Positions 9,042-63,843 of a stretch of 64,000 nt of DNA are shown here, piece by piece. A model generated the notes under the pieces. That model saw nothing but the letters and a program-made list of their open reading frames with translations. It searched no databases and had not been told where the DNA came from. The position numbers were made by a program, and so were the translations under genes. The DNA lies in the sequence record NC_048053.1; one strand, 5' to 3'. Numbering within the stretch: the first letter of the stretch is position 1; each line of letters opens with the position of its first letter.

Positions 9042-9297
9042 TCGACTCCACCACAAATTGAATTTGGTTGTTAACTCGCACCGACGCGATTCTCTTTCCT
9101 GATTTACAGAAAAGACCGTTCAAGATCCCCACAAGATCTGTAACGTGACTACCAGACGTAGCCGCGTAAACTTCAATGTCATCCGGAATGTCATTCGGAT
9201 TTAGGTGCCACAAAGTTCGTAGCACCGCATTGAAAGTTTCTGAACGTTCGACGAGGTTTCTGTTTAAAAACGTGCAAACGTCTTCGATACTAATCAT
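9028..9297 (-). CDS. Hypothetical protein (89 aa)
   Basis: Overlaps both neighbours in operon fashion. Confidence 0.7.
   Translation of the reverse strand: MISIEDVCTFLNRNLVERSETFNAVLRTLWHLNPNDIPDDIEVYAATSGSHVTDLVGILNGLFCKSGKRIASVRVNNQIQFVVESNEKV
9111..9122 (-). promoter_or_regulatory. CTGTAAAT motif upstream of the clamp gene
   Basis: TTTCTGTAAATC about 70 nt upstream of ATG 9041. Confidence 0.4.
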
Positions 9298-28905: not shown

Positions 28906-28916
28906 ATTTACAGATT
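28906..28916 (-). promoter_or_regulatory. AATCTGTAAAT motif
   Basis: About 29 nt upstream of ATG 28877. Confidence 0.6.
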
Positions 28917-40361: not shown

Positions 40362-41039
40362 TTACTCCAGAATATTTTCGGTGCGCGGTTTAAACGTTCC
40401 TTTGTTTCCGATTGCCGATTTGATTTGCGTAGGACTGAACACAACATAGAAAAAATGTTCGCCACGTTTCGCAATGATTCCATCCCTTCCGGTTGCGGCT
40501 GCAAACACTTCCGGAAAGCGCCACGATTCCGGCTCACCTGCGTAGATATCCTGAAACAGATTGTTGCCAGCAGTGATAACATCCATGCCAACAAAGTTAT
40601 CCAGATATTCTTTCTTCGCACTTGCCAGACCTTGATATTCAATATCATAGTTTTGTGCGAGAAACTCATTAAAATGAGGGCGCGTTAAACCGTTAGCAAT
40701 TTTAGTTGCTTGCGTAAGAGTCATACGCGGAGGCTTTTCAAAAATGATAGGCTTAGTGATTTTCAAATAGACGGGCATAGTGCTGCCACTATCTTTTGTG
40801 TAGTAGCGAGCGAATTCGGCAGAATCAGTGAAATAAAATCCAATACCGTATTCGTCGTTACCTCCACCCAAACGTTTTTTATCAAACGAATCAAAACTTC
40901 CCGGAGTTCCGTGGTAAACAACGAGAGGATTGCCTTGCGGATCTTTGACAACTGATTTTCCAAACCACTTGTCGAAGGCTGCTTGATCTTTTGAAGTGAA
41001 AGCCGAAATAGGCTTCGACAAACTTATTAGAAGTTCCAT
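40362..41039 (-). CDS. ADP-ribosyltransferase-fold protein (ART-PolyVal-like) with MELLISLSK leader
   Basis: FDKWFGKSVVKD..G.PLVVYHGT, GIGFYFT...A..Y, MPVYL....P, G.DGII, YVVFSPTQIKSA..N.G.F. Confidence 0.75.
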   Translation of the reverse strand: MELLISLSKPISAFTSKDQAAFDKWFGKSVVKDPQGNPLVVYHGTPGSFDSFDKKRLGGGNDEYGIGFYFTDSAEFARYYTKDSGSTMPVYLKITKPIIFEKPPRMTLTQATKIANGLTRPHFNEFLAQNYDIEYQGLASAKKEYLDNFVGMDVITAGNNLFQDIYAGEPESWRFPEVFAAATGRDGIIAKRGEHFFYVVFSPTQIKSAIGNKGTFKPRTENILE

Positions 41040-41717: not shown

Positions 41718-42938
41718 TTACTTCAACTTGATTGAAAGTTTCCCGGAATAAATGTCAGACATTAATCCAGTGATTGTACTTTCGAACATCACCTCAACCG
41801 GAATACTGGTTGAGTTGATCGCCAGTTCTATATCACACAATGCTTTCTGCAAATAGATAATCGCGATAGGTTCGATATTGAATTTTGCTTTCTTTCGGTT
41901 GTCGTTGAACTTACGCAGTTCCGCAGTTTGGAACTTATTAGTCTTTGCGATATCGCCGAGAATATAATGCAGAAGCCAACGAGATTTATGCAGCAAACCG
42001 CGAATATCAGCGGAACCGCGAACGGTGCGAATGATTTCGATCAGATCCATTTTGAGATAACCAGTAACAAAGTTTACTGCCATATCTCCCAAATTGATTT
42101 CAGGATCGCTTGCCGCCATATCCAGAACAAGATCGGTATTAAACTCTTCACCGCCTTTAACTGACGAATAGACAGTTTGGAATAAACCGATTGCACCACG
42201 CAACTGACCGCCTGAATATTCAGCGATAGTGCGAATCGCAGCGCGAGCTTCTTTCAGTTCTTTTTTATCCTTCGGCAAAATCTTTTCTGCTTTGGCGATA
42301 ACCTCAAGACGTTCTGCAATCACTTCCGGATCAATCGGATTGATTGGCAGCTTAACGCAACGAGAAAGAATCGTGCTCTTAATCTTTTGCGGATCAGTTG
42401 AGATTAAAACCCAAATAGTATGCGGTGCCGGATTCTCAAGCGGGATAAGGAATTTACTTTCCGCTTGAGTTGTCATCAGGTGCGCTTCATCGAGAATATA
42501 AACGCGACGGCGATACATAGGACTTAACGTACTACTTTCGATGATGCGTTGTGCGCCTTCAACTTTACCGCTATCGTTACCCATATCGTAGGTAAGAATA
42601 TCCGGATGGAAACCGCTATCGAATGCTTTACACGATGGACATTCACCGCACGCATTCAACGTATCGCAGTTGACCGTTTTACCGATGATGTTACCGAACG
42701 TTGTTTTGCCGGAACCTAAGTGACCGCTAATCAACATAACGGAAGGGAAAGTTTTTGTTTTCAACCAACCGCGATATTGCTTATGAATGTGTTCCTGTCC
42801 GATAAAGTCTTCAATACCTTTCGGGCGATATTTGTTTGCGAAGTTAATAGTGCTCAATTCAAACGAGTCACTTGTTTTCTTCTTTTTCTTTTTCTTTGTG
42901 TCTTTTTCTTCAATGATACGGCGCTTTGCTTTGGTCAT
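41718..42938 (-). CDS. dnaX: Clamp loader ATPase, DnaX (gamma/tau)-like
   Basis: KYRP..IEDFIGQEH, SGHLGSGKTT, Zn module C...NACGECPSC, ILDEAH, SRC motif. Confidence 0.92.
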   Translation of the reverse strand: MTKAKRRIIEEKDTKKKKKKKTSDSFELSTINFANKYRPKGIEDFIGQEHIHKQYRGWLKTKTFPSVMLISGHLGSGKTTFGNIIGKTVNCDTLNACGECPSCKAFDSGFHPDILTYDMGNDSGKVEGAQRIIESSTLSPMYRRRVYILDEAHLMTTQAESKFLIPLENPAPHTIWVLISTDPQKIKSTILSRCVKLPINPIDPEVIAERLEVIAKAEKILPKDKKELKEARAAIRTIAEYSGGQLRGAIGLFQTVYSSVKGGEEFNTDLVLDMAASDPEINLGDMAVNFVTGYLKMDLIEIIRTVRGSADIRGLLHKSRWLLHYILGDIAKTNKFQTAELRKFNDNRKKAKFNIEPIAIIYLQKALCDIELAINSTSIPVEVMFESTITGLMSDIYSGKLSIKLK

Positions 42939-42973
42939 TTCTGAATTCCAGTTTTAGGGATCGTATACAAGGA

Positions 42974-42984
42974 ATTTACAGATT
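42974..42984 (-). promoter_or_regulatory. AATCTGTAAAT motif
   Basis: About 36 nt upstream of ATG 42938, just after a terminator. Confidence 0.6.
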
Positions 42985-42989
42985 TGATC

Positions 42990-43025
42990 AAAAAAAAAGG
43001 GAACCGCGTCGTCTTCGGTTCCCTC
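42990..43025 (-). terminator. Rho-independent terminator closing the structured element
   Basis: AGGGAACCG-AAGACGACG-CGGTTCCCT followed by a run of about 10 T. Confidence 0.85.
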
Positions 43026-43029
43026 ACAG

Positions 43030-43280
43030 GGTAATAATGAATCGCTCTTTTTAGTTATGGGTAAACTCCAAAGAAACCTTTTCGAGTCGCTTTGGAGTTT
43101 ACCCGCCGGGCTGTCGGAACCCATTAGATAAACTCCCCCGCAGATTAAAGTGCGAAAGCGGGATACGCACCGGGCGAGTCTTACTGTCATTGGCCTGCCC
43201 GTGTCAGTCACTAGGCCAATGCACGCTCGCCGCTCCACAACGAACCTTCCTGCGAAAAGTTCTTGCAGCGTGAGTTTATA
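43030..43280 (-). ncRNA. Candidate structured non-coding RNA (unclassified)
   Basis: GC-rich intergenic stretch with perfect stems: ATAAACTC/GAGTTTAT, GGCGAG/CTCGCC, CATTGGCCT/AGGCCAATG, GTGCG/CGCAC, 15-bp GGGTAAACTCCAAAG/CTTTGGAGTTTACCC; ends in a terminator. Confidence 0.55.
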
Positions 43281-43851
43281 AATTAGAAAAAATTTCCAGT
43301 TTCTTATCCAAAGTCTGAATAAAGTTTTCGTCGAAAGCAAACACACGCTCAAAAGGAAGATTCTTGTTCCACGGTTGATCAAACAGAATAATGTGTTCTG
43401 CATCTTCTTCGCTGCTTTGACAGGTAAAATGAGGACGGTCATCAAAGATGATGAAATCTTCGTTATCAAAAACTTCTTGCAGAAACTCAATCTTGTTAGG
43501 AGAAGAGAAAGGATCAAGGAAGTAGTGATCAGAGAAAAGATTCCACTCTTCTTCGGTGAAGAGTTTGCGAGTAAGGATTGCTCCGAGTTTGTGATAGCCT
43601 CGATGCGAGCACGAATAAATTTCGTGGCCTTCCGCAATCAGACGACGAACCGTAGAAATAAAACCTTTACGAATTTCTACTTTATCCATGAAATACGCAG
43701 ACTCCATCAAACCGAGGAATCCAGAGCCGCCATTATCTTTTGTGAAATACTCATTCAACGGAATATCGTCACCGTGATTTTCTTTCAGATATTTGACGTA
43801 AAAAGGATGAGTGCATAAAGCAGTATCATCCCAATCAAAAACAATCTTCAT
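43276..43851 (-). CDS. HAD-superfamily 5'(3')-deoxyribonucleotidase-like
   Basis: MKIVFDWDDT, IIFDDRP, LFDQPWN. Confidence 0.8.
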   Translation of the reverse strand: MKIVFDWDDTALCTHPFYVKYLKENHGDDIPLNEYFTKDNGGSGFLGLMESAYFMDKVEIRKGFISTVRRLIAEGHEIYSCSHRGYHKLGAILTRKLFTEEEWNLFSDHYFLDPFSSPNKIEFLQEVFDNEDFIIFDDRPHFTCQSSEEDAEHIILFDQPWNKNLPFERVFAFDENFIQTLDKKLEIFSNL

Positions 43852-47870: not shown

Positions 47871-47881
47871 ATTTACAGATT
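47871..47881 (-). promoter_or_regulatory. AATCTGTAAAT motif
   Basis: About 18 nt upstream of TTG 47853. Confidence 0.6.
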
Positions 47882-49545: not shown

Positions 49546-49556
49546 ATTTACAGATC
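49546..49556 (-). promoter_or_regulatory. ATCTGTAAAT motif
   Basis: About 36 nt upstream of ATG 49510. Confidence 0.55.
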
Positions 49557-57615: not shown

Positions 57616-57626
57616 ATTTACAGATT
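57616..57626 (-). promoter_or_regulatory. AATCTGTAAAT motif
   Basis: About 50 nt upstream of primase ATG 57567. Confidence 0.6.
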
Positions 57627-57632
57627 ACGCTT

Positions 57633-57968
57633 ATGAACACAACGAACTATGCTTCTAATATTGTGCATCGAATTTATCCGGCTTTTTGGGTTCGATTCTG
57701 TAAATTGCTGGATATAGACGTGCGCGATTATGCTGTCTTCAAAGACGGATTATTTATCGGCCTGTCCATCCCAATTCCGGAAGAGAAAACAAAAGAATTC
57801 CATGAGGAATTTGAGAAGAAGTTTTTCAATCTGGAACGCATTAGTATTGAAACAGAACCAGTGCGGCACTATGTTGTTAAACAAGGATCATTCTTTTTCG
57901 ATGTATATTTCTTCGAGAAGAACATTTCAATTGAGGTGAACAGTGCGACAAATCCGAAACTTGTATGA
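57633..57968 (+). CDS. Hypothetical protein (111 aa)
   Basis: ORF divergent from the primase. Confidence 0.7.
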   Translation: MNTTNYASNIVHRIYPAFWVRFCKLLDIDVRDYAVFKDGLFIGLSIPIPEEKTKEFHEEFEKKFFNLERISIETEPVRHYVVKQGSFFFDVYFFEKNISIEVNSATNPKLV

Positions 57969-58005: not shown

Positions 58006-59022
58006 ATGGCGCTTGATGTTACTGTTCCGGAAAAACGTTACCCGAAGAAACGCGTTAGTCCTAGTATGTTTCCAATTTGCAGTATTCAGGAATATGCTGC
58101 ACGACTCTACGAAAAACATAACAAACATCTTTCGGGTGAGTCTGGAACCATGCTAAACATTTTTGCCAAAGCGGGAACGGGAATGCACGAAAGCATTCAA
58201 AACGCTTTAGGCAATACCGGGCAAATGGTTGGTCATTGGAAATGCAGTAATCCTGATTGCCCGGAACACGCAAAAACAAAAAGCGTGTATGAAAATGGCA
58301 AGCGTATTAAAAAAGGAAAACATACGCGCACACACTCTTGCGACAATATTTGTCCGAAGTGCAAAAAACCAATGGCGTATAGTGAACTAAAAGTTCTCTA
58401 CAAAAGTTTGAAAGGATATGTAGATGGACTGATCGACAACCTTGATGGAACTTACAGTCTTATTGACTTGAAAAGTACCACTGTCACGAAAGCGGCAGAC
58501 GGAACTTTCTTTGTTAAATATCATCGTTATCAGATCGCAACTTACGCATACATTCTCAAAAAACGCTACGGCTACAACATCGTTGATTATACGCTTGTGT
58601 ACGTTCCTCGCGACAACCCGAAAAAATTCGTTGAGAAAAGTTTTAAATTCGACGAAGCAGAATCTAAAATCGCATATAAATTTATGATGAAACAGATTCG
58701 CGCTTGGGATGCCGTGATGAAATCCGTTCGTAAAAAAGATCCTTCATACGCAATCGAAAAGAAACCGTGCAAATCTCCTGAATACTATTGGGATGAGTTT
58801 CATAAATACGACACTTGCCCTTTTGTAGATCACTGTTTCATTACTTCTCGTATGGTTGCGTTTTTGGAGGAAATGGAAAAACGAATTATGGCAAATCCTT
58901 CTCTGTCTTTCGCCGAAGTGGTGAAAACAAATCCATCTGCTGTTAAGAAAATGGAAGGTGGCCTTTTGCCTAAAAAGCAAAAGAAAACAGAGAAGCGCAT
59001 CGTAAAACAATTTGAACTTTGA
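58006..59022 (+). CDS. Cas4-like/RecB-family PD-(D/E)XK exonuclease
   Basis: SPSMFPIC, GTGMHE, GYVDGL, LIDLKS, QIATY, C-terminal C.....W......CPF...C; Zn-finger-like insert WKC..PDC...CDNICPKC. Start uncertain. Confidence 0.85.
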   Translation: MALDVTVPEKRYPKKRVSPSMFPICSIQEYAARLYEKHNKHLSGESGTMLNIFAKAGTGMHESIQNALGNTGQMVGHWKCSNPDCPEHAKTKSVYENGKRIKKGKHTRTHSCDNICPKCKKPMAYSELKVLYKSLKGYVDGLIDNLDGTYSLIDLKSTTVTKAADGTFFVKYHRYQIATYAYILKKRYGYNIVDYTLVYVPRDNPKKFVEKSFKFDEAESKIAYKFMMKQIRAWDAVMKSVRKKDPSYAIEKKPCKSPEYYWDEFHKYDTCPFVDHCFITSRMVAFLEEMEKRIMANPSLSFAEVVKTNPSAVKKMEGGLLPKKQKKTEKRIVKQFEL

Positions 59023-61540: not shown

Positions 61541-62059
61541 ATGGACACTAATAAACTACACTCACTCGGCATGTATGACTTTGTGGAAAAGTACGCAAGT
61601 AAGCACGGTCGATGGTGGAACTTTGATGAGCGTTCCTCAATTGTGGTGCCATTTGAATTGATGGATGATCAAAAAGTTATCCATTATAAGTGGATGCAAA
61701 ATGTTCCTGAAATTTTCATTAAGCCTGTTGTGGATGTTATTTTTACTTCATTACCAGAACAGAATGCTGAAAATTTTGGAAAAGAAGCCTCTGCTCTTTT
61801 CGAATGGCTCCGCCTCAATATCAAAGATCATGGTTTTCATTTCCGCTCGTTTGTCTTCAATAAAAATGACAAACGTGTTGGCGTTGTTTATCGTATCTTT
61901 GCTAATGAGGATTTTCCTTGTTACATCCATCCCGAATACATCACGCACGCAGAAGGCCGCGCACCGTGTCCGGCTTGTTATACTGCGGTGACTTTCGGAG
62001 AATTTCATCCTCTGGAAATCAAACCTGTTGATTCCCGTCTTATGGAGAAAACAAAGTGA
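61541..62059 (+). CDS. Hypothetical protein
   Basis: 172 aa; CPAC near the C-terminus. Confidence 0.75.
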   Translation: MDTNKLHSLGMYDFVEKYASKHGRWWNFDERSSIVVPFELMDDQKVIHYKWMQNVPEIFIKPVVDVIFTSLPEQNAENFGKEASALFEWLRLNIKDHGFHFRSFVFNKNDKRVGVVYRIFANEDFPCYIHPEYITHAEGRAPCPACYTAVTFGEFHPLEIKPVDSRLMEKTK

Positions 62060-62505
62060 CTCCCGGCTACTGGAAAGTTGTTCCTAACGAACGTTCCACA
62101 ACAATCATTCAGGCAATTTGCAGTGCAATTGTTTCTCCGGAAGATCTGGATGACCTGCACGTAACTCTGGCCTACGATAAAAACAATCCGGATAACGATA
62201 TTCCGTTAAGCAACGCTGATTTCAAAGCAACGATTTCTGGTGTTGAACTGTTTGGCGCGAACAGTGATATTCTGGTTCTTACTTTGGACTCGGAAGATCT
62301 GCAACGCGAACACGCACGCATTCACGAAAATCCTAACGTGAATTTCGATTTCATTCCGTATCGACCGCATATTACTATTGCGAAAAATGCTACGGAAGCA
62401 GAACTTGAATGCCTGCACAATATCATTATGTCTCCGAACATTCCTGTGCTATCGATTGTTCTCGGTGACGAATCGCGAGAAGATATTGATGAAAGTAGAG
62501 ATTGA
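62056..62505 (+). CDS. acb1: 2H phosphoesterase, Acb1 (T4 gp57B)-like
   Basis: Two HxT motifs (LHVTLAY, YRPHITIA); ILVLTLDSEDLQREH...FDF..Y.PHIT matches the Acb1 pattern as I recall it. Confidence 0.8.
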   Translation: MTPGYWKVVPNERSTTIIQAICSAIVSPEDLDDLHVTLAYDKNNPDNDIPLSNADFKATISGVELFGANSDILVLTLDSEDLQREHARIHENPNVNFDFIPYRPHITIAKNATEAELECLHNIIMSPNIPVLSIVLGDESREDIDESRD

Positions 62506-62770
62506 TCTCGACAAAGAAGACCAGTTAACTCCAAATGCGCAGCGTGCCGAAGATCGTGCGAAAGTACGCCGTCGCATCAAAGAGTATGGTGACACTCCTG
62601 ATGATGAAATAGATCAGAAGGAGAAAGAGAAGGAAGATCAGGCGGAAGAAAAACGCAAAACTGATAATCCTCCGCCTCCTGAAAATCTCGGTAAATTCAA
62701 ACCGGAAACTTACGAAAGTCTGGATCAACAACTTTCCCATATGGACAGACAAACTTCAAAAAATCTGTAA
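62489..62770 (+). CDS. Charged small protein (MKVEIDLD...)
   Basis: ATG 62489; leader resembles MIVEIDLS. Confidence 0.65.
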   Translation: MKVEIDLDKEDQLTPNAQRAEDRAKVRRRIKEYGDTPDDEIDQKEKEKEDQAEEKRKTDNPPPPENLGKFKPETYESLDQQLSHMDRQTSKNL

Positions 62771-62774
62771 ATAG
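62762..62774 (+). promoter_or_regulatory. AATCTGTAAATA motif upstream of the sigma gene
   Basis: About 32 nt upstream of ATG 62806. Confidence 0.6.
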
Positions 62775-62805: not shown

Positions 62806-63843
62806 ATGTCGGACAAGTCCAATCTTACGGGCGGTCAGACTGAGGAAGTTTTAGATACTCTGCTTTATGATTCATTACGCGAGATTGTAGAAAATACAGA
62901 CTTGTTTGATGTTCAGCTTGTCTATCTCCTTAGTTTGATCACTTCGAATAAAAAACGTAAGCCGTACAATGCTGAAACTCGCGAGCGTGCTATTAGTCTT
63001 GTGATTAAAACTCTGACTACTCCACGCGAAATGCGAATGCAGTATCTGGTTGAAGTGAAGATGGAGCGCAACTTCATCTACATCTTTTTGGAAAATGTTC
63101 TGAACAAGTATTATCGCACCTATGTTGATTTGTATCGCATGTTCATTTCAACAACGGATAGCGATAAGCGTCAGATATATGCAAAACGTTTGGATGTGAT
63201 TGTTCGTGCTACTGGTGCAAGTTCGCGTTCAAAACTTTTTGTAGCGCTTGTTCGTTTGAATGATATGTTGCCTTTGTTCAAAGACTATTTTCATTCTGTC
63301 GTTGCTGATTTCTATCGCTTGTGTCAAAAACACGCGAAGTTTTATATCGACACGAACAAAGGAAAACAATTTGATAGCAAGGATGTGAATCAAAATTTCC
63401 TCCGCAATGTGTTAATTGCAATAAATAAATACGATAGTGCTAAAGGCGCAATCGTTAGTTATGTTAAGTGGTGGATTCTCAACGCACAAACGTGTAGTAG
63501 TAGCGATCACGAATATGGTATCGCCTACACAATTCCGCAAACGCAGAAGAAACGTTTGGCAACGAAAGAAGACACTACTTCCGTGAATTTTTCTGTCAGT
63601 CTTGATACTCCGACGAATGAAACTTCTGATGAGGGGATGGACGCATCCCTTCACAATAAAATGGGCAGCGAAAACCTTGAAGATTCAGTTAACGGAACGA
63701 GACAGGCAGAGAAACTTGGCCTGTTGGTGAAACGTGTTGATCCATTCGGAATCGCTCGCCTGACTATGGATATTCGGGAAGCATTCGAAAAGGAAGAATT
63801 GGATTTCATGCAAGCCTACATGCGCCGACAAGACTTGTCGTAA
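62806..63843 (+). CDS. Sigma70-family RNA polymerase sigma factor
   Basis: Region 2 NVLIAINKYDSAKGAIVSYVKWWILNA; region 3.2 VSLDTP; no evident region-4 HTH. Confidence 0.8.
   Translation: MSDKSNLTGGQTEEVLDTLLYDSLREIVENTDLFDVQLVYLLSLITSNKKRKPYNAETRERAISLVIKTLTTPREMRMQYLVEVKMERNFIYIFLENVLNKYYRTYVDLYRMFISTTDSDKRQIYAKRLDVIVRATGASSRSKLFVALVRLNDMLPLFKDYFHSVVADFYRLCQKHAKFYIDTNKGKQFDSKDVNQNFLRNVLIAINKYDSAKGAIVSYVKWWILNAQTCSSSDHEYGIAYTIPQTQKKRLATKEDTTSVNFSVSLDTPTNETSDEGMDASLHNKMGSENLEDSVNGTRQAEKLGLLVKRVDPFGIARLTMDIREAFEKEELDFMQAYMRRQDLS

Follow-up and report, generated by a model that had tools for sequence, protein, structure and literature searches.

Jumbo phages have been studied intensively, and their non-coding RNAs are barely known. 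Several groups of RNA described elsewhere offer points of comparison for the element considered here, a structured RNA in the genome of Dickeya phage vB_DsoM_JA29 (NC_048053; Salmondvirus, 253 kb). Orphan motifs of phages and prophages (ROOL, GOLLD and the candidates of Fremin et al., 2023) are conserved, covarying, GC-rich intergenic folds that are not tied to one regulated gene, and the JA29 RNA answers to the same description. The pseudoknotted leaders of T4 gene 32, rpsO/S15 and the alpha operon/S4 share with it an H-type pseudoknot followed by a Shine–Dalgarno (SD)-like purine run, and the T4 gene 32 leader likewise adjoins phage replication genes. As in SAM-II, SAM-V and preQ1-II, the 3' strand of the pseudoknot abuts a GGAG for which an alternative pairing exists. 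Like the enterobacterial small RNAs (sRNAs) that derive from 3' untranslated regions (3'-UTRs) and end at a terminator, the JA29-type RNA would extend from a stop codon to an intrinsic terminator, and by functional analogy it may be set beside phi29 pRNA and bacterial Y RNA, protein-scaffolding RNAs whose genes belong to phages or lie near phage and repair genes; these are stand-alone structured RNAs of 100–300 nt proposed to bind a protein machine by way of conserved helices and loops.

The JA29 RNA lies in the 346 nt between an open reading frame (ORF) for a 191-aa protein and a clamp-loader gene, in a neighbourhood where all genes are on the minus strand, and the public JA29 record carries no annotation inside this gap. 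The window that we analysed is a stretch of 64,000 nt, in which the gap and its flanks are 100% identical to the record; its plus strand is that of the record, and adding 124000 to a window position gives the record coordinate. An earlier note on this DNA had described a GC-rich structured element of about 250 nt with a pseudoknot and mutually exclusive pairings, and had proposed an unclassified phage RNA or a DNA cruciform. All the sequence features that it listed were found on the minus strand (Table 1), and the element itself stands, its length now being about 220 nt for the folded part and about 290 nt with the terminator included. The region rises above chance in GC content (0.59 against 0.35–0.45 in the flanks), in folding energy (z=−3.8 without terminator-proximal trimming and −4.8 for 42985–43285, none of 100 shuffles being as stable) and in the pairings that relatives retain through compensatory changes. 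A chance origin is effectively excluded, and we consider it very probable that the locus specifies a structured RNA that is real, under selection and a member of a new family.

JA11, JA13 and JA33 are 95% identical to JA29 over the region, too close to be informative. More distant relatives were reached through their clamp loaders (48–53% identity) and comprise Yoloswag, pEa_SNUABM_5, AD1, many Alexandravirus isolates, Y3, pEa_SNUABM_7 (SNU7) and fHe-Yen9-02 (Yen9); uncultivated genomes were added from IMG/VR and metagenome scans, and two of these, L015 and L016, are intermediates whose clamp loaders are 82 and 78% identical to that of JA29. The resulting 23 distinct homologous sequences all occupy the same site, after the HAD-type phosphatase gene and ahead of the clamp loader, and have in common UAAGAC, a pseudoknot, GGGGAG, a small hairpin and a long hairpin with ACUCCAA/UUGGAGU. 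In the relatives the RNA measures 250–360 nt, and its conservation is at the level of the flanking coding DNA; a 376-nt Yoloswag version folds with z=−8.4. We refer to JA29, JA11, L015 and L016 as the short forms, and to the remaining relatives as the long forms, a consensus having been built for ten of them. Over the full structure of the short forms, both pseudoknot stems included, 95.8% of cells are paired, with nine double-change pairs against 3.2 in column shuffles (0 of 500 shuffles), whereas sliding the partners by 1–3 columns as a control gave at most three. Covariation across the homologous intergenic regions, which the earlier note had named as a check, exceeds that in shuffled alignments.

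Individual helices differ in the changes that they record. Comparative support for the outer helix, P1, is weak: it is 92.9% paired, with four invariant pairs, two one-sided changes, one broken pair and no double change. P2 is 100% paired in four lineages and shows six one-sided changes, GAAC/GUUC in JA29 becoming GAAA/UUUC in L015. It is P2, and not the enclosed CTGC/GCAG helix put forward originally, that proves to be the conserved helix; the latter is present in JA29, broken in JA11 (CTAC) and absent from L015 and L016. The JA11 group also breaks one pair of the nested hairpin P3a, which is conserved in position and variable in sequence, and the enclosing P3 has undergone two GC-to-AU double changes in L016 (GG..CC to AA..UU). 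The adjoining UAAGAC is nearly invariant over the 23 sequences. In the small hairpin, P5, a GC to AU double change occurs among the short forms, and over all lineages it is 95.7% paired with three covarying pairs. The long hairpin, P6, is 98.6% paired over 23 sequences and holds seven pairs that never vary between six that show double changes; the pair at its base is U–A, C–G or G–C in three different lineages. Together, P5 and P6 are 96% paired over the 23 sequences, with 12 covarying pairs (0 of 500 shuffles). The long-form consensus contributes 22 compensatory pairs and a lineage-specific 5' domain with the conserved loops GUAACACCGCGU and GCUACCUG. A further loop motif, ACCGUCAU, is found in P5 in Alexandravirus, Y3 and SNU7 and in a separate 5' hairpin in phages of the Yoloswag type, a relocation which suggests that it is a modular, putative binding site.

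The pseudoknot, too, is genuine, with covariation in both of its stems and at least nine stem versions. Among the short forms every cell of stems S1 and S2 is paired (100%), and both stems show double changes, S1 exchanging G–C for C–G, and S2 exchanging C–G for A–U and G–C for A–U. The MAFFT and covariance model (CM) alignments place it 1 nt out of register between lineages, and it was therefore parsed sequence by sequence. The same H-type layout was recovered in 22 of 22 parsed sequences, ending in each right before GG(A/G)G, with an S1 of 4–8 bp, a loop L1 of 1–6 nt, an S2 of 5–8 bp, an L2 of 0–3 nt and an A-rich L3 of 6–9 nt; shuffles of the segment matched the observed score in 0–4 of 500 cases per sequence. 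The Yen9 pseudoknot was fitted by eye (AGCGC/GCGCU and CCUCU/AGAGG). Across the sequences, the loops of the pseudoknot vary.

An element acting at the level of DNA (a cruciform, a replication origin or protein-binding iterons beside replication genes) would be in keeping with the perfect 15-bp inverted repeat, with the 7–8-bp words that occur in both orientations and with a site inside the replication gene cluster. However, 105 of 526 helix cells are G–U and six are A–C, so that 96% of the helix pairing holds on the gene strand and 77% on its complement. This asymmetry indicates that the element functions as RNA, transcribed in the direction of the genes; the opposite strand folds with z=−2.9. 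Helix sequences vary freely while their pairing is kept, the repeated words differ by lineage (AAACUC, GACUC, GCAUAC) in a way that tracks the RNA pairing, and the pseudoknot, which covaries, would be meaningless in a cruciform. The DNA-level reading, including the cruciform of the earlier note, is thus highly improbable. A small protein-coding gene, or the decayed remnant of one, deserves next to no weight. A stop-free frame of 227 codons (42954–43637, minus strand) does run across the RNA and the terminator, also covering part of the HAD gene in another frame; a product of 79 aa could start from an ATG at 43190, and JA29, L015 and L016 have stop-free frames of 71–75 codons. In JA11, however, that sole ATG is CTG, and in L015 the equivalent frame meets a stop after 11 codons. 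Lineages differ by indels of 1, 2 and 7 nt that shift the reading frame, no ORF is common to the long forms, and the frame passes through a terminator and through helices whose substitutions are compensatory. The 227-codon frame was rejected as a gene and is an artefact of the GC-rich RNA, and both the DNA-element and the coding readings are effectively excluded. Two public records place small 'hypothetical protein' ORFs over the RNA, the strand differing between them: Yoloswag gp204 (L004, 1743–1907) and pEa_SNUABM_5 gp214 (L008, 1734–1859), probably spurious calls over non-coding RNA.

The 3' half of the RNA contains a triad of invariant or nearly invariant segments: the GGGGAG after the pseudoknot, a CUCC in the 5' arm of P6 and a GGAG in its 3' arm. 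When sequences from ten lineages were folded without the P6 3' arm, the predicted minimum-energy structure paired the CUCC with the first GGAG in all ten; when the full RNA was folded, the CUCC was predicted to lie in P6, again in ten of ten. The two copies each of TAAACTC and GAGTTTA, from which mutually exclusive helices had been proposed for JA29, do form two alternative helices in a repeat search, one of 8 bp, and that proposal now has comparative backing. GGGGAG in JA29 runs on into GAGUUUAU (43135–43128), whose possible partners are the P1 5' strand and the P6 5' arm. The two 10-mers that compete in Yen9 have the same sequence (GGAGUAUGCC), and among the short forms the base beside GAGUUU follows its partner in the alternative helix (A–U in JA29, G–C in L015, G–U in L016). 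On these predicted folds mutually exclusive pairing is a conserved design feature, and it explains why the bases of the triad cannot drift. P6 is not followed by a U tract.

Table 1. Features of the JA29 RNA, its flanks and the related modules (window positions unless a contig is named; a blank cell means that nothing was given)
Feature	Position	Strand	Evidence or remark
Whole structured RNA, short form, P1 through P6	43059..43279	minus	fold, CM match, covariation
P1 outer helix ATAAACTC/GAGTTTAT	43279-43272 with 43135-43128	minus	repeat finder, 8 bp
P1 5' strand AUAAACUC	43272..43279	minus	partner 43128-43135; comparative support weak
P2 hairpin CUGCAAGAAC/GUUCGUUGUGG	43235..43268 (arms 43268-43259, 43245-43235)	minus	covariation
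P3 GGCGAG/CUCGCC	43173..43231 (43231-43226 with 43178-43173)	minus	encloses P3a and 3' internal loop
P3a nested hairpin CATTGGCCT/AGGCCAATG, perfect 9-bp inverted repeat	within 43224-43186	minus	repeat finder
3' internal loop AGUAAGA, conserved	43185-43179	minus	alignment
H-type pseudoknot	43137..43171	minus	covariation of S1 and S2
Pseudoknot S1 GGUGCG/CGCACU	43171-43166 with 43154-43149	minus	
Pseudoknot S2 CCCGC/GCGGG	43162-43158 with 43141-43137	minus	
GGGGAG, near-invariant, directly 3' of pseudoknot, first GGAG of triad	43133..43138	minus	invariant columns G49-G51, G53
P5 small hairpin UGGG/CCCG, conserved loop UUCCGACAG	43107..43123	minus	covariation
P6 hairpin, perfect 15-bp stem (43104-43090 / 43073-43059) and 4 extra pairs, including seven invariant pairs ACUCCAA/UUGGAGU	43059..43104	minus	repeat finder
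Intrinsic terminator (putative) GGGAACCG/CGGTTCCC and T9	42990..43023	minus	8-9-bp perfect GC-rich stem, 9-nt loop
Promoter-like motif TCTGTAAAT	42974..42982	minus	between terminator and clamp-loader start
Other TCTGTAAAT copies	9102-9110, 28906-28914, 47871-47879, 49546-49554, 57616-57624	minus	
Other TCTGTAAAT copies	57697-57705, 62764-62772	plus	
Upstream gene, HAD-type (DxDxT) phosphatase, 191 aa	43276..43851	minus	ORF list; translation starts MKIVFDWDDT
Downstream gene, clamp loader (DNA polymerase III gamma/tau-like)	41718..42938	minus	ORF list, record, relatives
Small hairpin and terminator module of long forms	L005 2140-2227 (AD1); L004 1600-1680; L009 2140-2222; L011 2140-2224; L006 2130-2210		

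The RNA matches no described family. Rfam 15 (4227 models) was searched at gathering thresholds and, permissively, at E up to 10: the whole window gave no match at gathering thresholds, the RNA region gave three chance-level matches to microRNA and long non-coding RNA models (10–16 bits) at E up to 10, and the RNA of six relatives gave no match. ARAGORN found no tRNA or tmRNA genes in the 64-kb window. The description as an unclassified phage RNA without tRNA, tmRNA or Rfam identity was borne out, and the Rfam scan that had been suggested yielded no family. ROOL and GOLLD are far larger than the JA29 RNA and have no sequence or structure match to it in Rfam 15, and in contrast to the orphan motifs as a group it is limited to one jumbo-phage clade and one syntenic site. 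A large survey of viral structured RNAs lists 8,495 unnamed IMG/VR candidates (Fremin et al., 2023; PMC10690425). It contains no mention of Erwinia, Dickeya, jumbo phages or clamp loaders (PMC10690425). A fragment of the RNA could be among its unnamed models. Literature searches found no description of the RNA.

Could the RNA be catalytic, a new self-cleaving or other ribozyme that processes a polycistronic transcript at a gene boundary? Small ribozymes are abundant in phages, the RNA sits at an operon boundary, and a few invariant nucleotides remain unpaired in its compact, pseudoknotted core (UAAGAC and GGGGAG). Those invariant nucleotides are few, however, no cleavage site is indicated by the sequence, and there was no match to a known self-cleaving ribozyme (hammerhead, twister, twister-sister, pistol, hatchet, HDV-like or glmS), or to any other Rfam ribozyme, even at E up to 10; we regard a ribozyme as quite improbable. 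For a type III antitoxin of the ToxI kind, no tandem repeats were found in 42900–43350, and the neighbours are the HAD phosphatase and the clamp loader. As to a sponge for CsrA, a rough count found GGA motifs not above expectation.

At least 57 GenBank records contain the RNA: 46 recovered by blastn with the AD1 version, in each of which it occurs once per genome and is annotated as 'none', six of the JA phages, and five comprising Yoloswag, SNUABM_5 and Yen9. They belong to Salmondvirus, Alexandravirus, Yoloswagvirus, Rivsvirus, Sasquatchvirus and Snuvirus, together with the unclassified fHe-Yen9-02, all jumbo myophages of Erwinia, Dickeya and Yersinia, and the RNA is unannotated in every public record of these six genera and of fHe-Yen9-02, an omission that annotations of the clade should make good. 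A CM of the core detected a single copy in the window (43058–43185, minus strand, 81 bits). At the clamp-loader site the RNA is absent from Lu11-like phages, from Alcaligenes phage Afa-NA1 and from contig L052. A scan of 2.9 million viral contigs for GGGGRG...ACUCCAA...UUGGAGU gave 45 matches, of which the genuine ones all fall in the same jumbo clade and the remainder are chance. The best outsider (L095, 16 bits) lies within a 348-aa ORF on the other strand and was rejected, as were L064, L072 and L078, where the matches are iteron-like TTTGGAGTAAA repeats. In a pattern scan of 185,579 bacterial and archaeal genomes, 82 chance matches came from unrelated taxa and none from Enterobacterales; these score at most 33 bits, whereas true members reach 58 bits or more. 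No match was obtained by blastn against all complete E. coli genomes and PLSDB plasmids, and the RNA is therefore not an obvious mimic of a host RNA at the sequence level.

Gene order around the RNA differs between the two forms. The short-form RNA begins where the HAD gene ends, the stop codon (43278–43276 in JA29) falling within the first helix strand, and about 35 nt past P6 there is a GC-rich hairpin followed by a U run on the transcribed strand, a putative intrinsic terminator. A consensus terminator scan passed over it, the scan's loop limit being 8 nt and the loop here 9 nt; its stem is kept, with altered sequence and compensation, in JA11 and L016. The position of the RNA in the four short forms would fit a 3'-UTR-derived sRNA, although it is longer and more structured than those sRNAs, has a pseudoknot, showed no seed-like complementarity and in the long forms is parted from the upstream gene by a terminator. 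The long-form order is HAD gene, small hairpin, strong terminator, RNA, promoter motif, a gene for a protein of 66 aa, terminator, promoter motif and clamp loader. The small hairpin and terminator, absent from JA29-type phages, form a module of their own, with a covarying stem and the loop ANGGAGUU (always ANGGAGU(U)), and resemble either an attenuator or an independent sRNA of about 100 nt. The 66-aa gene (65–70 aa; L005, 2568–2765, and homologues) is present in all long-form phages, in 51 records, whereas no homologue is detectable in JA11, JA13, JA29 or JA33, and L015 and L016 also lack it. In Yoloswag and SNUABM_5 it is preceded by a membrane-type gene of 107–119 aa, and the downstream neighbour of the RNA is thus, according to lineage, the 66-aa gene, the 107–119-aa gene or a terminator. 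The Yoloswag ORF of the 66-aa type (L004, 2542–2745) is unannotated.

The promoter motif in these arrangements is TCTGTAAAT, of which the window holds eight exact copies against 0.71 expected (11-fold; 0 of 100 shuffles). All copies are in gaps, 30–60 nt ahead of start codons and usually after AAA, and in the relatives the motif is also found ahead of the 66-aa gene and of the clamp loader. It is probably the phage's own promoter element, middle or late, judging from this distribution; a phage sigma factor gene is annotated at 62806–63843.

Our working hypothesis, to which we give an even chance, is that the locus is an undescribed stand-alone RNA gene, confined to this clade, whose product serves as a trans-acting binding platform or decoy. 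In JA29 the RNA would be the 3' tail of the transcript of the upstream operon, or else would be initiated at a weak promoter that overlaps the stop codon; ending at the intrinsic terminator, it would be a discrete, stable RNA. The 3' domain would fold in two steps, GGAG-1 pairing with CUCC until the P6 3' arm displaces it and leaves GGGGAG free. The RNA would then bind a protein or ribonucleoprotein partner in trans, with no control of a neighbouring gene, and the partner would recognize the invariant P6 duplex, the GGGGAG exposed beside the pseudoknot and the conserved hairpin loops. A stand-alone trans-acting RNA is favoured because the fold is kept where the 66-aa gene is missing, JA29, L015 and L016 showing compensatory changes among themselves, because what lies downstream differs between lineages and carries a promoter motif of its own, and because the duplex and loops are of the kind expected for recognition. 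The covarying pseudoknot, the invariant 7-bp duplex and the competing-helix triad are features that usually mark specific molecular recognition. Compared with phi29 pRNA and Y RNA, the JA29 RNA has no sequence or model similarity and no packaging or Ro/Rtc gene context.

Whether the RNA acts in trans rather than in cis is, taken on its own, evenly balanced, and several observations weigh against the stand-alone reading. No sigma-70-type promoter upstream of the RNA passes a promoter scan; the sigma-70-like TTGTCT-N17-TCTAAT lies upstream in AD1 and Y3, and its TCTAAT part is conserved down to JA29, but it has C at the key second position and does not pass. The ends of the transcript are inferred from the sequence. 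In the long-form relatives a strong terminator stands directly upstream of the RNA and none separates it from the next gene, an arrangement that would suit a 5' leader just as well. Competing helices such as those of the triad are commoner in cis switches than in RNAs that act in trans. A search for antisense targets elsewhere in the window gave 10–12-mers at chance frequency and revealed no partner or target. Lastly, the phages that carry the RNA are nearly the same as those that carry the 66-aa gene, a hint that the two work as a pair, with a cis or autoregulatory use. The 66-aa protein is modelled by AlphaFold with a pLDDT of 90.7 as beta-beta-alpha-alpha-beta, with no significant fold match in PDB, no Pfam family above threshold and no recognizable RNA-binding fold in the model.

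The corresponding cis-acting reading is a leader or switch, either a protein-binding autoregulatory element like those of T4 gene 32 and S15 or a riboswitch, in which the toggle would control the expression, processing or stability of its own transcript, the target being the 66-aa gene in most relatives and the flanking operons in JA29. We consider it possible, though on the unlikely side. Besides the near co-distribution, it draws on the stretch of 60–90 nt, free of any terminator, that separates the RNA from the 66-aa gene after it (Alexandravirus, Y3, SNU7 and Yen9), on the mutually exclusive helices predicted in all lineages tested and on the SD-like GGGGAG directly after the pseudoknot. 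Yet the four short forms keep the fold by compensatory change without the 66-aa gene, phages of the Yoloswag type have an extra gene in between, and a promoter-like motif follows the RNA everywhere. No start codon is conserved behind either GGAG, and in most lineages none lies at SD distance; no overlap of the alternative pairing with the JA29 terminator, or with an SD linked to a start codon, was found, and no pairing that competes with that terminator was found either. By contrast, the T4 gene 32, S15 and S4 leaders are short and stand directly before the start that they regulate. The varying neighbour, each time preceded by its own promoter-like motif, is at odds with the consistent placement, before a coherent set of genes, expected of a riboswitch and makes a dedicated cis-regulator of the clamp-loader operon unlikely. 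A ligand pocket would be lined by the loops of the pseudoknot, yet these vary, and the RNA further differs from SAM-II, SAM-V and preQ1-II in the lack of an Rfam match and of an ORF to regulate, in its larger fold and in its extra conserved hairpins.

It is interesting to speculate, at an unlikely extreme, that the stand-alone RNA is the founding member of a new class: a two-state, pseudoknot-anchored RNA whose SD-like GGGGAG and invariant duplex reprogramme the infected cell by capturing either a replication protein of the phage or a factor of the host, such as the 30S subunit, protein S1, CsrA/RsmA or a nuclease specific for GGAG. Alternatively, it could be a new ribozyme class. In both cases it would be without counterpart among described RNA families. 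For the present the RNA is a solid find as a new family, and not yet a new kind of mechanism. To RNA biologists it offers a compact new family, and to phage biologists a candidate regulator within the replication module. These jumbo phages are biocontrol candidates for fire blight and potato blackleg.

The upstream ORF had been called a nucleotidase. It matches PHROG families 16292, 420 and 415 at E values from 1e-15 to 1e-7, one of them labelled polynucleotide kinase, and found no match among Pfam, NCBIfam and PDB sequences; its relatives in other phages are annotated as HAD-like, polynucleotide kinase or deoxyribonucleotidase. With the DxDxT motif and these weak PHROG matches the label is plausible and weakly shown. 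The gene for the single-stranded DNA-binding protein SSB is about 20 kb from the RNA. Three genes downstream of the clamp loader, a 225-aa protein (40362–41039, minus strand) has an ART-PolyVal ADP-ribosyltransferase domain (Pfam, E 2e-27), and its syntenic counterpart in pEa_SNUABM_7 is annotated as an RNA polymerase ADP-ribosylase. On the plus strand, neither of them adjoining the RNA, GenBank labels gp212 (58006–59022) 'CRISPR/Cas system associated' and gp220 (62056–62505) 'RNA ligase'.

Repeat arrays were met at two other places in the comparison. The small IMG/VR contigs L064 (4480–4700), L072 and L078 carry dense TTTGGAGTAAA and TTTACTCCAAA repeats in both orientations beside a poly-G/poly-C hairpin, an array suggestive of an origin or operator region, with no relation to the RNA. 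Alcaligenes phage Afa-NA1 (PV550095, 78 kb), whose clamp loader is 52% identical to that of JA29, has in place of the RNA (L010, 2460–2830) seven to eight direct copies of a motif of about 15 nt (AACTGATACATGAG and variants), which may be iterons or repeated promoters.

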